From sequence record KT919973.1: a DNA stretch of 64,000 nt, one strand, 5' to 3'. Position 1 is the first letter of the stretch, and each line of letters opens with the position of its first letter. The position numbers and the translations under genes are program-made. Shown one piece after another: positions 17,192 through 30,553 of the stretch. Under the pieces are notes generated by a model that ran no database searches, was not told the origin of the DNA, and saw only the letters and a list, made by a program, of their open reading frames with translations.

Positions 17192-18217
17192 ATGTCACAC
17201 GCAATCTTTATCGGACGCTTTCGTCCATTCCACAACGGTCATCTATCTGCAATCACCCAAGCGTTCGAATCGCTTAATCTAGACAAGATGACTATCTTAA
17301 TCGGTAGCTCTAATCGACATCGTTCAGTTAAAAACCCTTTCACGTTCGAAGAAGTACGCGATATGATGGGTGTTGCTTTACCTGACGATATTCGAAGCAA
17401 AGTTCGCTTTGTACCACTAGGTGATTACGCGAAAGACGACGTTTGGCAGTCAAATGTTCGTTCTCATACAAAAGGTGCCACTCACATCGTTGGTTACGAC
17501 AAAGACGAAAGCAGCTACTATCTCAAGCTATTCCCTGAGCTAAAACTATTTCAACCAGAACCAGTGAAGATGTATAACAGAGTTATCTCTGCAACTGACT
17601 TCAGAGAATTGTACTTCAGCGAGATTCTACTGAACCACCCTGTTATGTCTGGTCTGATTCCCAAGCAAACAATGATGTTTCTTGACGATTGGAGCAAAAC
17701 AGAGCATTTCACTGAAATGAAAGCTGAATACGATAGCTCAGTGCGCGAAATCGAGAAGTTTAAAGACTATCCCTACCAAGGTCACTTGAATATCGCGTGT
17801 GCTGACAGCGTTGTGATGTGTGCAGGTCACGTTCTTCTTGTCGAGCGTAAGTTCAACCCAGGCAAAGGCTGTTTAGCATTACCTGGCGGTCATAAGCACG
17901 AGAAAGAAACATTCTTGTCTGCTGCGATTCGTGAACTGCAAGAAGAAACTAACATCAAAATCCCAGAGAAAGTCTTGCGTGGCTCTCTCAAAGGTGAGAA
18001 GATGTTCGATAACCCTAATCGATCTTACCCTCACACTCGTATCACTATGGCATATCACTTCAAAGTGCAGCCAAACCCTGACAACACTTTCCCGAAAGTG
18101 AAACCAGCCGATGATGCTGTGTCTGCAAAATGGTATTCGTTGAGCGAAGTAATGGAAATGCAAGAACGTTTGTATGACGATCATTATCAAATCATTCAGT
18201 ACTTCACTGGCATCTAA
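17192..18217 (+). CDS. natV: Bifunctional NMN adenylyltransferase / Nudix ADP-ribose pyrophosphatase (NadM-Nudix)
   Basis: IGRFRPFHNGH (HxGH), KNPFTFEE, SATDFR; Nudix box GGHKHEKETFLSAAIRELQEET. Confidence 0.95.
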   Translation: MSHAIFIGRFRPFHNGHLSAITQAFESLNLDKMTILIGSSNRHRSVKNPFTFEEVRDMMGVALPDDIRSKVRFVPLGDYAKDDVWQSNVRSHTKGATHIVGYDKDESSYYLKLFPELKLFQPEPVKMYNRVISATDFRELYFSEILLNHPVMSGLIPKQTMMFLDDWSKTEHFTEMKAEYDSSVREIEKFKDYPYQGHLNIACADSVVMCAGHVLLVERKFNPGKGCLALPGGHKHEKETFLSAAIRELQEETNIKIPEKVLRGSLKGEKMFDNPNRSYPHTRITMAYHFKVQPNPDNTFPKVKPADDAVSAKWYSLSEVMEMQERLYDDHYQIIQYFTGI

Positions 18218-18222
18218 CTAAC

Positions 18223-18241
18223 GGGGCAGTAATGCCCCTTT
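18223..18241 (+). terminator. Intrinsic terminator
   Basis: GGGGCA-GTAA-TGCCCC-TTT. Confidence 0.7.
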
Positions 18242-18253
18242 GAGGAAATTAAT

Positions 18254-18873
18254 ATGAGCATTAAACAATTAGCAAAAACTGAAGTAAACAATTACAACAC
18301 TGCATACGTAGATGTATACAAAATTCGTGAAGATATGATTGCAAAGTACTCTGCTGCTCGTGCATGTGTTGAACGCGGCGATGGTACTATGAAAAACTGT
18401 ACATTACGTCGTGAAATCTGTCGCGCTCTTGATAATTCTAGTGATTGGAATAAAGTTGCTAAGACTGATTCTGGTCGTCTATTGTATCAACGAGTGAAAA
18501 GCAATTCACTAGAGAACTTTGTATGAACGCATACCGAATCAACACATCAATCGAAGAACTAGCAATAGTAAAAGGCGATTTGTTTGTTCAAAGTCCATTC
18601 AATGAACATGAATATAAAATGGCTCGTCAACCTCAACGACCACCAATGCACATCGACTTGATTACTCAGTTTCATCATCTTTATAATGAAACGACTGCTA
18701 CTGATGACGAAATCGCTGAATTGGTTCTAGAATGGAAGAATCAATTCAAAACACGAACCGAAGCATTGAATATGTTTCGCCAATCACTAATCGAACAGCG
18801 CCAATCGATTGATGAACAAATCAAACAAACTACATCTACCATTGAACAATTACGTGAAAAGTTCGGAGAGTAA
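18254..18873 (+). other. Two hypothetical CDSs: 18254-18526, 18523-18873
   Basis: ORF track; overlapping junctions. Confidence 0.7.
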
Positions 18874-18874
18874 T

Positions 18875-19501
18875 ATGCACGCATATGACTTAGTAAGAAA
18901 AATGCAAAAGGTTGTTGAGTCTTGCGAGACAATTGAACAACTACGCAATGCAAGAAAGTACCTCATGCGCTGTCAAGACTATGCACTAGATGGCGGCAAT
19001 GATAGCTACATCACTACTATCATGGTAGAAGTGCAAGACTTAGACGAACGCATCACCGATAAGATTGTTGAGTTGTCTGATACTCGTGGCATGAACGCTA
19101 TCGAAACTGGCGTTATCAAAGTCGGCATCGATATTCATGGCGTAATTGATCAATCACCAGAGTTCTTCGCGCTGTTAAGCAAACTACCAGTTGAAGTGCA
19201 TATCATCACTGGCATTAAAGAAGAACTCGATACTGATGTACCAGATGACTTAGAGTATGACCACTGGTTTAGCATTCATCAATCATGTGAAGACGACGGC
19301 GTTGAAATCTTGTACGACGAGAAAGGTCGCCCATGGGTCGATGACGAAATCTGGAACAACAAGAAAGCTGAATACTGCCGTGAGAATCAAATCAATATCA
19401 TGATCGATGACTCACCAACGTATGCTAGATCCTTCGAAGGTCTTGATACTTTCTATCTACAACTAACAAATACTGTTCGTGATGAATGGAGACGCAAATG
19501 A
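18875..19501 (+). CDS. HAD-like phosphatase/nucleotidase with N-terminal helical extension
   Basis: VGIDIHGVID, IITG, KKAEYC, IMIDDSP. Confidence 0.7.
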   Translation: MHAYDLVRKMQKVVESCETIEQLRNARKYLMRCQDYALDGGNDSYITTIMVEVQDLDERITDKIVELSDTRGMNAIETGVIKVGIDIHGVIDQSPEFFALLSKLPVEVHIITGIKEELDTDVPDDLEYDHWFSIHQSCEDDGVEILYDEKGRPWVDDEIWNNKKAEYCRENQINIMIDDSPTYARSFEGLDTFYLQLTNTVRDEWRRK

Positions 19502-20609
19502 GAAATTACGGCATTATAGACCGAGAAGGCAGATATCTACTTGTGCTAGACATTGACAATGAGATAAAAGTCATGGCAATCTTTTCTGAAATCGAAGATG
19601 CAAATCGTGTGCTGTACAAATATGATTTCGACAAACAAGGCTTTCGTGTAATTGAACTACAACCATTGGAAAAGAAACTATGAACGTATCAAATGTAATG
19701 TCACAACACGCTGAAATTCAAGATGCACTTATTGCCATGCTTGACGATGAGTTCAACGGCAAAGGTCATATCGAATATGCAGATTACTTCGATGACGAAC
19801 AACTATGGGAAGTGCAATACTTCGATGGTGAAACAGTACAAGAAGTCATTGTAACTACAGTCGCGCTCGAAAAATGGATGCATAATAACAAATGATACAT
19901 GACATTATCATCGAACATCGTCGCATCATGAACATAGTCACTGAGTTATGCCAACTCAAATCATATGAATTCATTGATGACATCGAGTACGATGAAGACA
20001 AACAAATATTCTATGTCACCATCGCTGAAGAAACTCAAAACGGCACTGAATACATAGAATGTAAAATCACTCTGCAACTAGTAGAAAACTACTATAAGGC
20101 TTGACAATGAAATTACCAGAATACTTACAACACATCAAAGTAAACGAAAACGTAATTACAGTAGACTCAGCACGCGATAAAGCATTAGTCATCGATTACC
20201 TACAATCAATCAAAGCACGATTCCATACTGTACAAAAGACAGTTAGCCGCTGCGAAATTCACGTCAAGAGAGCTTAATCATGAAAGAACTACTTAAAACA
20301 ATGAAAGAAACTGAAGAAGCCATCGCAGCGAAGTTTGGTCTCGACCATCTATGGCACGGACTAGTAGACTGCACCGATAGCGTATTCGCTGCTGATGAAC
20401 AAGACCTACTAAAAGCACACGAATTCCAATACGGCGATTGTGAAAAGGCAATCACAGAAGGCAACTGTTATGGCGTTGAAGTGTACGGCACAAGCGTGTG
20501 GCTATCAGATGATAAACAATACCTACTGATTGTAGCTGATGATGGAAGTGGCAATCGAGACTTCTATATCTTCGATATGTCTAAACACTCAGATTGCGAA
20601 ATGTACTAA
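19486..20609 (+). other. Small hypothetical CDSs: 19486-19683, 19680-19895, 19892-20104, 20107-20277, 20280-20609
   Basis: Tight packing; strongly C/A-rich + strand. Confidence 0.65.
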
Positions 20610-20611
20610 AG

Positions 20612-20682
20612 AAAAGGGTTGACAACTGTCAGCCCTTTCGCGTATCATACACATATCAAATCAAGAAAGGAAAAACATTATG
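20612..20682 (+). promoter_or_regulatory. Terminator/promoter cassette
   Basis: AAAGGGTTGAC-AACT-GTCAGCCCTTT; TTGACA-18bp-TATCAT; AAAGGAAAAACATTATG. Confidence 0.85.
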
Positions 20683-21516
20683 ATTGGACTATCTATTATC
20701 ATCGCAGTATTCAGCGTCGTGCTAATGATAGACTCACACGAGCAAATCATGTCTAAAGAATACAGAAACTTTGTCTTGATATTCAATGCCATTTGCTGTA
20801 TAGTCAATCTAGCTAACATGATTGTGATTCACAAATACGGAGTAACACTATGAGCTTGACAATACTACTAATGACACTTCTATGCTGTGCAATACTCACT
20901 GGCATGAGTATCTTCAGCTTCATTAACAAACCTAGCTTCGTGAAACTAGTAATCACTGCTGTTCTAGGCTTTGTCTCATATGTTCTACTACACGTAACGG
21001 CAGGCGCAATATGAATCAAACTATCAAAGCAATATGCATAGACAATACTTCAACTCGTATCGATAAACCCGAACCACCAAGCGGCATTACTCTCGGCAAA
21101 GAATATGTCGTTCACATGTATAACGTAAACGAACATACAAACAAACCACCTATGATTCGTATTACTAATGACAACAACCAACGAGCAAGCTATGTCGCTG
21201 CACGATTTAATCTAACAGTAGGATAAACTCATGTTCGCACTATCAATCTTAATTCTGATTCTCACTACATATCTGTTTGTAACCGATAAATCAAAACGAA
21301 CAGTTCCATTCGTGGCTCTGCTAATAACAACTGCGTTTAACTGTATCATTCAGTATTACCTAATTGATATTCTATCATTGAGCTTTAGTCTGAAGTAACA
21401 TGCAAACATTAATCGATTTACTAAACGATATACCCATCGGCTACATTATGCTTGTTCTATGTGCTCTAGCAGCTATAGCCGGATGGTGCTTGAGCGATAT
21501 GTCAAACAATGACTAA
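20680..21516 (+). other. Operon of small membrane peptides (20680-20853, 20850-21014, 21231-21398, 21400-21516) plus soluble 21011-21226
   Basis: Manual translation: 57, 54, 55 and 38 aa, each with 1-2 hydrophobic segments; coupled junctions. Confidence 0.65.
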
Positions 21517-21547
21517 AAACGCTTAGAATCGCTCTCACAGCGTCTCA

Positions 21548-21594
21548 GAGCATGGTACATATAGTATTGTTTTTAATATATCGCACCATGCCTC
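21548..21594. other. AT-rich element in an inverted repeat (candidate DNA-unwinding element)
   Basis: GAG-CATGGT...ACCATG-C-CTC enclosing a stretch with only 3 G/C in 25 bp (21557-21581). Confidence 0.5.
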
Positions 21595-21607
21595 GTTTAA
21601 ATGCACA

Positions 21608-21716
21608 TGTGTATAAATCTGTGGATAATATGTGTATGAGATTGTGCATAAGTGTCTGAAATCTGTGTATAAAAACATGATTTAGCTGTGCATAAGTCTG
21701 TGGATAATGTGGATAA
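21608..21716. repeat. Array of eight co-oriented DnaA-box-like 9-mers in noncoding DNA (candidate origin)
   Basis: TGTGTATAA 21608, TGTGGATAA 21620, TGTGTATGA 21631, TGTGCATAA 21643, TGTGTATAA 21664, TGTGCATAA 21687, TGTGGATAA 21699, TGTGGATAA 21708; 7 match TTWTNCACA exactly on the minus strand. Confidence 0.9.
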
Positions 21717-21886
21717 CTTTTTAGTGAAAAATTGGTGAAAGTCTCATCGGCTCCTGTGTGGTACGCGGCAGTCTAAAACCTTACACCATTTGTAAAAATC
21801 TAATCCGCTTCGCATCTTTTTGCTTGACACTCAATGCCGTCCTGTGAGAGGATGAGAAGACAACTGAACACCTTGGGAGGGGTGAT

Positions 21887-22033
21887 ATGATAACATTAGC
21901 TTTGTTTTATATGAGTCGCGACATGCAATACAGTGAGCGACCAAGTGACTTGTACCTTGGTACATGTATTTTAGACTTTGCATTAATCGCCACGATGTTC
22001 TGTGGTGTAATGATGTTCACTGGTAATTGGTAA
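21887..22033 (+). CDS. 48-aa membrane peptide
   Basis: Strong GGGAGGGG RBS; hydrophobic C-terminal half; TAATG coupling to the next gene. Confidence 0.6.
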   Translation: MITLALFYMSRDMQYSERPSDLYLGTCILDFALIATMFCGVMMFTGNW

Positions 22034-22356
22034 TGTTGTTTAAGAATTACAAAGTGAATCGCCATGTACGTGCTCGTGCTCTAGAGTTATTGAATTGTGG
22101 TGAGTTGCATCGCGTGTACACCTGTTTAGAGCTACAGCGTGGTGTGAATTCAGAAATGGTTAGCTTGATTAAGCTTAAACTAAAGCATTTGCAGCGTATG
22201 TATGTTCGCCAGAGTGATATGCCGAATGAGTTAGAAGATTGTTATTCTTTTATCTGTGCGCATCATCCGCCCTGTGAGCGTCGTAAGTTGCGTGCATATG
22301 AGCGCAAGAGCTGGTTGAAATACATTATAGAGAACATTAATAAGGTTAAGATATGA
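22033..22356 (+). CDS. Hypothetical protein, RKxWLK paralog family (copy 1)
   Basis: A.ELL...YTC and ERKSWLKYI motifs. Confidence 0.7.
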   Translation: MLFKNYKVNRHVRARALELLNCGELHRVYTCLELQRGVNSEMVSLIKLKLKHLQRMYVRQSDMPNELEDCYSFICAHHPPCERRKLRAYERKSWLKYIIENINKVKI

Positions 22357-22427
22357 ACGTAGTCTGCCGTTACTGGCAGATGATTATAAGCGTTGCAGTG
22401 ATGTAGAATTTTTCTAAGGGGTATTAG

Positions 22428-23039
22428 ATGAAACGAGTAGAAAGAAACAAAAAGGTAGTAGAGAAGCAAGCGGTCATGCCTAGTGGTAGTTTATCGCGAG
22501 TTGAGACGTACTACAACACATTGTCTGGTTATTTGAATTTCATTGATTCGGGTGATGGTATTCGTGGTGTAGAGCAGCCGACATATATGCTTGTATGTGA
22601 TGACGGTTCGTTTTATTCAGTAGAAGAAGAGCGCGTGAATGGTAATGTGCAGCGAGAGACTAAGATTAATGGTCAAAAAGTCTCTGTACATGCACGCCTG
22701 AAGCTATCAGCGAAAGATTGGGATTGGTATCCTTGTAAGTGGAAGAGCGGGCGTCTTGTTTACACGTATAAAGAAACTGATTTTGTCGATGAAGAGCATG
22801 AGCTAGTGGTTGGTGAGATACTAGACATTTATGCCGCAAGCGATAGTGTATTGGCATATGCACATGACGCGACAGTTGTCGTATCTCGTCCGACACAAAT
22901 TGCCGTTGAGACGTATGGTAAACTAGTTGTGTTTACAGTTGGTGATTCTAGTGTTGATGAACTAGTATCTGATTGTGGTGATTATCGTATTGATGGTCGT
23001 TATCTTGCTAGTCAGTACGATGAAGAGCTTCATTCGTAA
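22428..23039 (+). CDS. Hypothetical protein
   Basis: 203-aa ORF; G/T-rich codon usage. Confidence 0.7.
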   Translation: MKRVERNKKVVEKQAVMPSGSLSRVETYYNTLSGYLNFIDSGDGIRGVEQPTYMLVCDDGSFYSVEEERVNGNVQRETKINGQKVSVHARLKLSAKDWDWYPCKWKSGRLVYTYKETDFVDEEHELVVGEILDIYAASDSVLAYAHDATVVVSRPTQIAVETYGKLVVFTVGDSSVDELVSDCGDYRIDGRYLASQYDEELHS

Positions 23040-23048
23040 AAGTTAAAG

Positions 23049-23111
23049 AAAAGGGTTGCGCTATGCAGCCCTTTTTTGTATTATAATGACTTTGATTTGG
23101 AGAATATTATG
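23049..23111 (+). promoter_or_regulatory. Terminator/promoter cassette (left flank of endonuclease)
   Basis: AAAAGGGTTGC-GCTAT-GCAGCCCTTTT; TTGCGC-17bp-TATTAT; GAGAATATTATG. Confidence 0.85.
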
Positions 23112-23858
23112 GCTAGAATTAAATGGACACTTGAACGTCTTAAAGAAGATGCGTTGAAATACAAGACACGTACTGAATGGTGTAAAAACTCACAAGGTGC
23201 TTACTGTGCTGCGTCAAAACGTGGGTTACTTGATGAGTGCTGTTCTCATATGCATTCATCAATTAAAAACGCATTTTCTCGGTGTATATATCGAATATAT
23301 GCAGATAATGAGATTTACATTGGGTTGACTTACGATACTAAGCAACGCTTTAGTTCTCATCGAAAGCAAACACCTCAGATTATTGACCTAATCGAACGTC
23401 ATGGCATTGAAAACGTCAAGTTCGAGCAATTGACTGATTATATGAATCAAGAACTGGCGCAGTTGTCCGAGAAAGAACACATCAAACAGTACAGAAATGA
23501 CGGATGGGTTATTTTAAATCGTTCTAAGGCTGGTGCATTAGGGTGTTCAACATTAAAATGGACACTAGAACGTCTCAAAGAAGATGCATTGAAGTACAAG
23601 ACACGTACTGAATGGAAGAAAATGTCGAGCGGTGCTTATATGTCTGCTTATAGACGAGGATTGGTTGATGAGTGCTGTGCTCATATGTCATTGATGAAAG
23701 GTTATTGGACACTAGAACGTCTTAAAGAAGATGCATTGAAATACAAAACTCGCAACGAATGGCAGAAGATGTCGAGCGGTGCTTATTCTACTGCTAAGAA
23801 AAAAGGCTTACTAGATGAGTGTTGTGAACATATGCCGAAAAGAGCCAAACGAAAATAA
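23109..23858 (+). mobile_element. GIY-YIG endonuclease with three ~44-aa WTLERLKEDALKYKTR...DECCxHM repeats
   Basis: CIYRIY...IYIGLT...RFSSH catalytic module between repeats 1 and 2. Confidence 0.8.
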
Positions 23859-23864
23859 TTTAAT

Positions 23865-23939
23865 AAAAGGGTTGCGCTATGCAGCCTTTTTTTGTATTAT
23901 AGCTTTATCGAAACGACAACGACTAGAGAGAATATTATG
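23865..23939 (+). promoter_or_regulatory. Terminator/promoter cassette (right flank), near-identical to 23049-23084
   Basis: One mismatch over about 36 bp; ATCGAAACG at +1 (23907). Confidence 0.9.
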
Positions 23940-29649: not shown

Positions 29650-30553
29650 TTCAGTAGACAAGATTGCCATGTACATGTCGATGGTGAGTAAAACCCCTTT
29701 TCGATACAAGGGTAATCTATATGTCCCTAAGACCATGCGCATTCAAGAGAACATACGCAAGGGATTTTTATGTCCAGCGTCGTGTGGTTCATGTTGTGGT
29801 CGTTGGAGTTTGGATTATCTACCAAATGACTATCTCGATGAACATGACACGTATGGTGTAGAGACACGCGCTCCGTTAGAAGCTCAATCTGACTTATACG
29901 AAAAGCGTGTAATCAATGTCAACGGGAAAGACGTAGTTTTACTTTCTGACACTCAAGAAAAAGATTACACGAATCGAACCTTAAAGCCGAATGCATGTCG
30001 TAATGTCAGTATGACAGGTCGTTGTGATATTCACAATTTCGTATTACAAGGTGATTATGGTCAACCGTTCTCATGTGATTTCGAAATCATACGTTTCATC
30101 TCACCTGCTGGTCATGCTCAAGGTCATGTAACAGAGAAGCAATTCAAAGAGGGTATTAGATACTCGATTGGTCGTATTACAACTGATCTGTATGCCAATG
30201 ATCGTCATATGCGCGACGTACATGGTAAATGGCGTGAAATGAAGAGCTTGTCACACCCTGATTTCATCGATGTTAAACATGTTGATTTACCTGGCCCTAA
30301 GTGTAAGCTAACTGACGTAGATGAAGACAGCGTTGCCGATGCGATTCGTAAGTTTCGTCGTCTACAAGTATGGAGTGATTACTTCGGTATTGAGACGTGG
30401 TTAGATGAGATCATCGACTGGCTTGAAACAAAGAAATTCGGTTCGTTTGTTGTTAATGCACAGCCACAGACGAAATACAAAGAATCAGATACTGGTTATA
30501 CGAATATGAAGCCGTATAACCTAAGTGATTACGAGAAGAATGAAGATAATTGA
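29630..30553 (+). CDS. Cys-cluster protein (YkgJ/FliB-like zinc- or iron-chelating domain)
   Basis: CPASCGSCC...CRN...GRCDIH...PFSCDFE. Confidence 0.6.
   Translation: MHCVKVDSVDKIAMYMSMVSKTPFRYKGNLYVPKTMRIQENIRKGFLCPASCGSCCGRWSLDYLPNDYLDEHDTYGVETRAPLEAQSDLYEKRVINVNGKDVVLLSDTQEKDYTNRTLKPNACRNVSMTGRCDIHNFVLQGDYGQPFSCDFEIIRFISPAGHAQGHVTEKQFKEGIRYSIGRITTDLYANDRHMRDVHGKWREMKSLSHPDFIDVKHVDLPGPKCKLTDVDEDSVADAIRKFRRLQVWSDYFGIETWLDEIIDWLETKKFGSFVVNAQPQTKYKESDTGYTNMKPYNLSDYEKNEDN

Follow-up and report, generated by a model that had tools for sequence, protein, structure and literature searches.

A sharp strand-composition step at a conserved non-coding gap in Vibrio phage phi-ST2: gene-block junction or replication origin?

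An abrupt reversal of strand composition among genes that all point the same way raises the question of whether it marks a replication origin. Such a flip surrounds a non-coding gap near 21.5-21.9 kb in Vibrio phage phi-ST2 (KT919973.1), a KVP40-like, T4-related member of Schizotequatrovirus with a genome of 250,485 bp that infects Vibrio alginolyticus. The DNA analysed, called the window here, is a stretch of 64 kb identical in sequence and numbering to bases 1-64000 of that genome. The initial annotation took the flip as support for an origin at a group of DnaA boxes in the gap. Our analysis confirmed that the flip is real, that it is the sharpest in this genome and that it lies on a conserved non-coding region. 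Its reading as an origin was weakly supported. The reading that we favour, at what we judge to be a little under an even chance, is that the step is the junction of two conserved early-gene blocks with inherited opposite composition, placed at a conserved regulatory gap.

Sliding GC-skew differences, calculated with sliding-window sizes of 300-1500 bp, placed the top positive step of the window at 21438-21620 at every scale. The step measured +0.38 to +0.46, about 4-5 standard deviations (sd) of the sliding difference (sd 0.07-0.12). The detrended cumulative-skew minimum of the window fell at 21608, inside the gap, and the flip was thus centred on the gap as had been proposed. Over all 250 kb, the step at 21.45-21.62 kb was the biggest up-step, the runner-up being +0.30 at the 93.8-kb strand switch. 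The 1-kb skew profile covered 1-64 kb and 100-250 kb, and its most G-skewed interval was 22001-23000 (+0.314); nothing comparable appeared in 64-100 kb in the coarser record available there (a 5-kb profile and step differences). The remaining large steps in the window stood beside its few minus-strand genes. The hand counts on which the flip had originally been recognised were exact, with 15 C and 5 G in 21121-21180 and 18 G and 8 C in 22801-22860. The flip was also independent of any change in gene orientation, as had been claimed: it lies within the long early region (79 kb), whose genes nearly all have + orientation, and every annotated gene between 9958 and 46853 has it. Its polarity, with the + strand A/C-rich on the left and G/T-rich on the right, is indeed the one expected at a bidirectional origin.

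The same contrast was seen at third codon positions. Against a baseline of 118 open reading frames (ORFs), in which the GC skew at third positions (GC3) averaged -0.065 (sd 0.197), most genes of 18965-21226 had GC3 skews of -0.31 to -0.73, including the lowest values of the window. The three genes of 22033-23858 had +0.46, +0.39 and +0.31, among the four highest. The AT skew at third positions (AT3) shifted in the opposite direction across the flip. The anomaly reached 2-4 kb per side, the right flank being at baseline by ~23.9 kb and the left having faded by ~17 kb. The flip is therefore a local feature and not a replichore-like one. In the early region, the 17 intergenic gaps measuring 90 bp or more had a mean third-position keto (G+T) step of -0.002 (sd 0.09), and the 21.6-kb gap alone reached +0.272. 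A general effect of promoter-bearing gaps was ruled out by that mean.

At the scale of the genome, skew tracked gene strand at both 5-kb and 1-kb resolution, being positive over + genes and negative over the - genes at 79-114 kb and 150-167 kb. Because the sign follows gene orientation, the turning points of the cumulative curve at ~79, 114, 150 and 167 kb are strand switches, and none of them is at 21.6 kb. By the position of the skew minimum, suggested earlier as a check on the origin, the origin reading thus fails at genome scale, where the turning points lay elsewhere, although the local, detrended minimum lay within the gap. The phi-ST2 genome paper likewise reported that skew follows transcription, and set a nominal 'origin' at nucleotide 1 from the cumulative curve (PMC5107563). 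Both this origin and the terminus published with it, at 242,751, derive from net positive skew in an arbitrarily linearised, circularly permuted genome (PMC5107563). The origin is not a mapped one, and the skew there merely follows transcription.

The two sides of the flip differed in how the bias was carried. Codon counts for the inner left block were taken from its nine ORFs up to 21398. The 4-fold degenerate sites had frequencies of A.49, C.19, G.09 and T.23, compared with.31/.12/.16/.41 elsewhere (chi-squared p=3e-12). In the sliding analysis, the block held the lowest GC skew (-0.52) and the highest AT skew (+0.40) of the window at such sites (GC4 and AT4). Among 2-fold codons, AAA made up 81%, GAA 86% and CAA 95%. 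The left block used GGC where the rest of the genome has GGT, and its proteins contained few Gly, Arg and Trp. Farther out, sliding GC4 skew dropped to -0.35/-0.40 from ~17.8 kb, and the 4-fold counts of the outer left block were A76 C40 G25 T111. The A/C pattern of the left block was repeated in KVP40 and QD01. In the right block, C/(C+T) and A/(A+G) at 2-fold sites were 0.25 and 0.38, against 0.49 and 0.67 elsewhere. AAG reached 59%, GAG 67%, CAT 9/9 and TGT 10/10, and Val, Arg and Cys were more frequent. The 4-fold sites of this block were ordinary in phi-ST2 (p=0.86). Taken as a whole, the contrast is one of amino (A+C) versus keto (G+T) bases with the polarity expected from single-strand deamination, and the left side shows it more cleanly than the right.

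We then compared the ~11-kb locus of eight phages. In all of them the top up-step (+0.38 to +0.48) fell within ~150 bp of a 17-mer that is invariant and served as the alignment anchor. The number of TTATNCACA boxes was 7 in the six close relatives and 5 in QD01. KVP40 had no such box in the homologous gap, where an unrelated sequence of the same length stood between the same flanks, and alternative repeats found in that gap were none of them convincing. V07 had no TTATNCACA box in the whole locus, its homologous gap included, and by alignment its module was likewise a box-free, unrelated sequence of equal length. KVP40 showed the same step (+0.42) all the same, and the step is therefore not tied to DnaA boxes. 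This showed the box array to be a lineage-specific version of a variable module that is not needed for the step. The proposal that the flip supports an origin at the DnaA-box locus was thus not borne out: a phage without the boxes keeps the step, the anomaly spans 2-4 kb with its right side tracking genes, and the skew of the genome follows gene orientation.

The gene content of the right block was informative about what the composition belongs to. The 48-aa and 203-aa genes were present in every phage. The 107-aa gene occurred in six phi-ST2-clade genomes and was absent from KVP40 and QD01, and the 102-aa gene was found in XZ1, VH7D, ValKK3, phi-Grn1 and KVP40. Right-block genes of all kinds were G/T-shifted, and the next gene was ordinary in each phage. 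The 203-aa orthologue was G/T-type at any start distance from the anchor, whether 292 bp (QD01), ~685 bp (phi-ST2) or 929 bp (XZ1), and the following gene in QD01, at +994, had normal composition. Right-side composition therefore follows genes and not distance.

Synonymous sites were unsaturated between the clades, the identity at 4-fold sites being 0.60-0.79 compared with 0.3-0.4 by chance, and the shared composition of orthologues can therefore be inherited. For the same reason, cross-clade persistence fails as proof of an ongoing force. Polarised substitutions were collected as singletons in six phi-ST2-clade and five KVP40-clade genomes (pooled n=11), which yielded few events and low power. 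For the left block, the pooled ratio of keto-ward to amino-ward per-site rates was 0.81 (0.57-1.15), compared with 1.06 (0.55-2.02) for the right block (right versus left, z=0.69 from these few events). The controls gave 0.73 and 1.01, and the two clades pointed opposite ways.

The features of the locus are collected in Table 1. The layout of the gap was conserved in KVP40, V07, Va3 and QD01 when aligned with phi-ST2 (alignment A1), comprising in order a 5' element, a variable module of ~120 bp, the 17-mer and a promoter-like site. An unannotated 38-aa ORF ending at 21516 forms its left border.

Table 1. Features at and around the composition step of phi-ST2, in window coordinates.
Feature	Position	Strand	Description
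Outer left block	17192..19501	+	NadM-type adenylyltransferase gene and adjoining genes; 4-fold sites with C>G and still ordinary A/T; start of ramp
Inner left block	19486..21516	+	Ten short genes, several small membrane peptides; third positions A/C-rich
Non-coding gap	21517..21886		370 bp; longest intergenic region of the 79-kb early region; centre of the step
5' element	21519..21597	+	Largely invariant across the five aligned phages
DnaA-box array	21608..21716	-	109 bp holding seven TTATNCACA matches, of which three are perfect TTATCCACA
Invariant 17-mer CTCATCGGCTCCTGTGT	21743..21759	+	Between box array and promoter; identical in all eight phages
Putative early sigma-70-type promoter	21824..21853	+	TTGACA, 18-nt spacer, TGn, GAGGAT; read from sequence
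Right block	21887..23039	+	48-aa membrane peptide, 107-aa and 203-aa proteins; G/T-rich via 2-fold codons and amino-acid usage
GIY-YIG homing-endonuclease-like gene	23109..23858	+	Free-standing; Pfam PF01541, phrog_314; G/T-shifted, more weakly

The 5' element was predicted to fold into a hairpin with a 9-bp stem (GAGCATGGT / ACCATGC-CTC) and an AT-rich loop of ~28 nt; folding gave -18.1 kcal/mol and a z of -1.95 as RNA, and a z of -2.3 as DNA. That loop was the only AT-rich unwinding candidate in the gap, whose GC content is 0.37-0.42, and it is a modest patch. The least stable 40-mer of the gap, starting at 21542, reached the 99th percentile of the window and stood outside its top eight. The box array also contained one degenerate copy at 21632. 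All copies had the same orientation and were roughly in helical phase, with start-to-start spacings of 12, 12, 11, 21, 23, 12 and 9 bp. Seven of the 25 TTATNCACA matches in the 250-kb genome lay in the array, which was their sole cluster, and its eight 9-mers stood 108-216 bp upstream of the -35 hexamer. GATC sites were missing from 21400-22000 (0 against 1.4 expected), and no IHF consensus was found on either strand of the gap region.

The putative promoter has a perfect TTGACA at -35, and this hexamer and its surroundings were invariant in the alignment. Its -10 hexamer reads GAGAAT in the relatives. A GGAGG ribosome-binding site lies downstream, followed by the conserved 48-aa membrane ORF. 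The consensus promoter scan did not flag the site at 21824-21853, the -10 being weak, and Rfam gave no match at E<=1 in 21000-22500. QD01 carries an annotated minus-strand ORF of 101 aa over the box array (QD01_174; L008/L020 5194-5499), for which the phi-ST2 counterpart is only 47 aa long; QD01_174 is probably a spurious gene call. A search of IMG/VR with the 17-mer returned three contigs besides KVP40 and VH7D; the two larger ones, with 45-57% GC, look like chance matches, the third is 2.7 kb long, and none was used.

The independently deposited records of the close relatives vB_ValM_R11Z and PVA23 were linearised within the gap, 30 bp apart (window 21782-21812; MT612989.1 position 1 and ON190025.1 last base). 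These points lie between the box array and the -35 hexamer, and by its BLAST coordinates R10Z was linearised likewise. The PVA23 paper made no statement on termini. Real DNA ends, a nick or anomalous coverage could lie behind the shared breaks.

In the reading that we favour, a left A/C block (~17.8-21.5 kb) and a right G/T block abut at a gap that holds a hairpin, a variable ~120-bp module and an early-type promoter. The right block begins at the promoter and takes in the 203-aa gene, with a weaker continuation over the homing-endonuclease gene. Composition would belong to the genes and would have been inherited across the genus, and the step would not be a footprint of fork direction. We prefer this reading because the step was equal in all eight phages, box-free KVP40 included, because skew across the genome follows gene orientation and composition on the right follows genes, with normal 4-fold sites there in phi-ST2, and because pooled polarised transitions showed no significant asymmetry at the low power available. 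T4 initiates replication mostly in a recombination-dependent manner, and the same would be expected of phi-ST2, judging from PMC3016281. For such a phage, the left block seems to deviate too far (by ~0.5 in GC4 skew and in AT4 skew alike) for replication to be the cause.

A number of observations weigh against a mere junction of blocks. It needs a coincidence, in that the most extreme A/C and G/T blocks of the genome abut with the polarity of an origin at the most conserved and longest gap, for which our rough estimate was <1%. Other promoter-type gaps showed no step. In the sliding analysis, the composition of the left block ramped toward the gap over ~3 kb. The non-homologous genes on the right (the 107-aa, 102-aa and endonuclease genes, the last 52-82% identical) were all G/T-type, and genes inserted on the left were mildly A/C-type. 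In the other clades the right block deviated at 4-fold sites too, weakly in KVP40 (GC4 skew +0.47; p=0.13 for the 4-fold sites) and significantly in QD01 (+0.65; p=0.019). Amino-acid usage shifted in the same way as codon usage, which is typical of nucleotide-level pressure. The chance that two records linearised at arbitrary points of a 247-kb genome would break so close together in the gap was ~2e-4. Translational selection or tRNA matching was rejected as a sufficient cause, since the left block is T-poor at 4-fold sites and the highly expressed late genes prefer NNT there. In the 2-fold families, those late genes favoured NNC (0.88 at Y sites) and NNA, and they were not G/T-type. The left block is therefore not of the high-expression type, and the right block was anti-optimal at 2-fold sites. 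The phage tRNA set, in which 26/26 anticodons have U34 or G34, was compatible with both selection and nucleotide-level bias.

The gap may instead be a T4-type origin, an explanation that we regard as a serious, if less likely, rival. A transcript from the early promoter would prime replication with the help of an iteron-like array, and strand asymmetry would act in place. Strand displacement or R-loops, recurring in both directions, would leave the + strand exposed to the right of the origin and the - strand to its left, and deamination (C to T, A to G) would drive the composition of the exposed strands toward G/T only near the origin; the DnaA boxes would be an optional accessory of one lineage. 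The mirror-symmetric keto/amino polarity at synonymous sites and in amino acids is what single-strand deamination predicts. The uniqueness of the step among the 17 gaps, the ramp on the left and the decay over ~2 kb on the right, and the local type shared by non-homologous inserted genes also fit, as do the deep conservation of the non-coding elements of the gap and the two independent genome records broken 30 bp apart.

The mapped origins of T4 offer a partial parallel. T4 initiation is R-loop and recombination-dependent, its oriE consists of an early promoter and evenly spaced 12-nt repeats, and its forks start slowly and yield sub-genomic DNA (PMC3016281). The phi-ST2 gap resembles the oriE layout in having a conserved early-type promoter near same-orientation repeats ~11-12 bp apart. 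It differs in that its repeats fit the consensus of host DnaA boxes, in that the KVP40 clade lacks them, and in that the locus is not syntenic with oriE. At T4 oriF (NC_000866, 115321, leftward primer RNA), + strand skew was -0.28 to -0.36 over 600 bp downstream. The non-template strand there is G-rich (~0.3-0.36) across uvsY at 114.7-115.3 kb (L031 3200-3800), similar in size to the right block of phi-ST2, where the non-template strand is also G-rich after the promoter. In contrast, T4 oriG (152947) had no local skew, and neither oriA nor oriC is located at a skew shift (PMC3016281). T4 origins therefore cannot be recognised dependably by local skew.

Other results also speak against a T4-type origin at the gap. 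The extent of the right block followed gene content and not distance, and its 4-fold sites were normal in phi-ST2. Polarised substitutions revealed no detectable asymmetry at their low power. The left block deviated very strongly, given that the process would operate in only some rounds of replication, and the unwinding element was weak, with neither GATC nor an IHF consensus nearby. We know of no origin mapped in any T4 relative other than T4, and to our knowledge the KVP40 group lacks MotA, so that the middle-promoter origins of T4 are not usable there. The gap could be the first recognisable origin of KVP40-like (MotA-less) T4 relatives, oriE-like, with a repeat module that turned into a host DnaA-box array in the lineage of V. 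alginolyticus/harveyi phages, and the skew could be the footprint of long-lived single-stranded DNA from bidirectional strand-displacement initiation. We consider this fuller proposal doubtful.

Divergent transcription without replication appears distinctly improbable. It would combine a strong rightward early promoter with an unrecognised leftward one, producing asymmetry or R-loops on both sides. The earlier assertion that transcription cannot explain the flip was nevertheless too strong, since a conserved promoter and a transcription-unit boundary lie where the flip occurs. The -35 hexamer is conserved as a perfect TTGACA, and the G/T-type region starts at the promoter and covers the genes after it. 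A GC-skewed non-template strand promotes the formation of RNA-DNA hybrids (Ginno et al. 2013, cited in PMC12599619), which would suit such a mechanism. However, neither the scan nor inspection by eye found a leftward promoter, and the genes just 3' of a better consensus promoter at 20619 (11/12 matches) were A/C-type. The other gaps were stepless, and the heavily expressed late genes are not G/T-type.

About as improbable is mosaic acquisition, in which the two blocks would have been imported separately from donors of different codon usage, leaving the gap as a recombination junction. Horizontal transfer of gene clusters is known among T4 relatives (PMC3016281). The right side is a hot spot of gene gain and loss, with its 107-aa and 102-aa genes and 0-2 endonuclease copies, and the endonuclease cassette has a copy of the same terminator on either side. 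On the other hand, both blocks and their composition were present in all clades examined, so that an import would predate the genus. Several unrelated genes would need donors of the same bias, and the mirror polarity would stay unexplained.

The version put forward in the initial annotation, in which host DnaA opens an oriC-like bidirectional origin at the array and leading/lagging asymmetry produces the flip, is very improbable: the seven boxes in 109 bp, in one orientation and in the only cluster of the genome, kept as 7 in the six closest relatives and as 5 in QD01, and the fitting polarity have to be set against the step in the box-free KVP40 gap, the absence of a genome-scale skew switch at 21.6 kb, the lack of GATC and IHF consensus, the weak AT-rich patch and a literature search that found no report of DnaA boxes in T4-like phages. 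T4-type phages are not known to use DnaA. The search also found no report of an origin or DnaA boxes at this locus in KVP40-like phages.

Compared with other known systems, the feature is an unusual variant of familiar things, namely local compositional steps and promoter-plus-repeat regions. It shares with the replication strand asymmetry of bacterial and some viral origins (Lobry, Grigoriev) a sign change that is independent of gene orientation, G/T on the right and A/C on the left, and visible at synonymous sites. It differs in extending 2-4 kb per side and not over a replichore, in a genome whose overall skew follows transcription, and its right side tracks genes and in phi-ST2 has normal 4-fold sites. 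DnaA-box clusters exist outside oriC, as titration sites of the datA type and within origins of plasmids and phages, P1 oriR among them. The phi-ST2 array is similar as a dense cluster of consensus boxes on a mobile replicon, but neither partner initiator iterons nor an IHF consensus were found in the gap, and the replicon is a T4-like phage that has a replisome and a helicase loader of its own. Cowe and Sharp in 1991 reportedly linked the heterogeneity of codon usage among T4 genes to expression time and phage tRNAs. The gene blocks of phi-ST2 likewise differ in synonymous usage within one phage; unlike that case, the left block is not of the high-expression type, and the axis is a strand-like A/C versus G/T one that affects amino acids too.

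One conserved non-coding region thus unites the sharpest asymmetry step of the genome, an optional host DnaA-box array and breakpoints of independent assemblies. If the skew is an initiation footprint, short-range steps could serve to find origins in phages whose replication otherwise depends on recombination. If nothing more than two gene blocks meeting lies behind it, the case cautions against taking local skew as evidence of an origin.

To the right of the gap, the three right-block proteins had no match in Pfam, NCBIfam, PADLOC or PDB sequences, and they fell into PHROG families without assigned function. The 203-aa protein was 61% identical to KVP40.0174. The GIY-YIG gene stood between two near-identical terminator hairpins (~23049-23079 and 23865-23891), with a promoter-like site at 23092-23119. 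In the relatives it encoded 249-407 aa and occurred in 0-2 copies, with two in tandem in Va3 and none in ValKK3, KVP40 and QD01. From this arrangement, the region (23047-23891) seems to be a mobile cassette that gave rise to the second terminator copy. Va3, R11Z, PVA23 and XZ1 each had 4-6 places matching the GIY-YIG gene.

To the left, the + strand ORFs 20850-21014, 21231-21398 and 21400-21516 encode hydrophobic products of 54, 55 and 38 aa. They are unannotated in phi-ST2 and annotated in XZ1, ValKK3 and QD01. They overlap or abut their neighbours in the manner of an operon and are probably real small membrane peptides. An extra gene of ~180 aa was located directly left of the gap in phi-Grn1 (L013/L019 5557-6102), where it was mildly A/C-type, and in phi-pp2 (L027 5765-6304). 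The two phages belong to different clades, which suggests another mobile insertion at the junction.

With regard to mutation, phi-ST2 carries queE, queF-like, folE, queD-like and queC genes of the 7-deazaguanine pathway (KT919973.1 72.5 kb and 238.6-246.3 kb; L002, L005). This hints at a modified guanine in phage DNA or tRNA that could affect mutation spectra. A second, weaker G/T-type stretch, which includes thymidine kinase, was observed at 29.8-32.7 kb of the window, with C/(C+T) of 0.31-0.35 and A/(A+G) of 0.48-0.58. The stretch starts beyond the intergenic region 29650-29810; among the 500-bp up-steps, the third largest was located at 30316.

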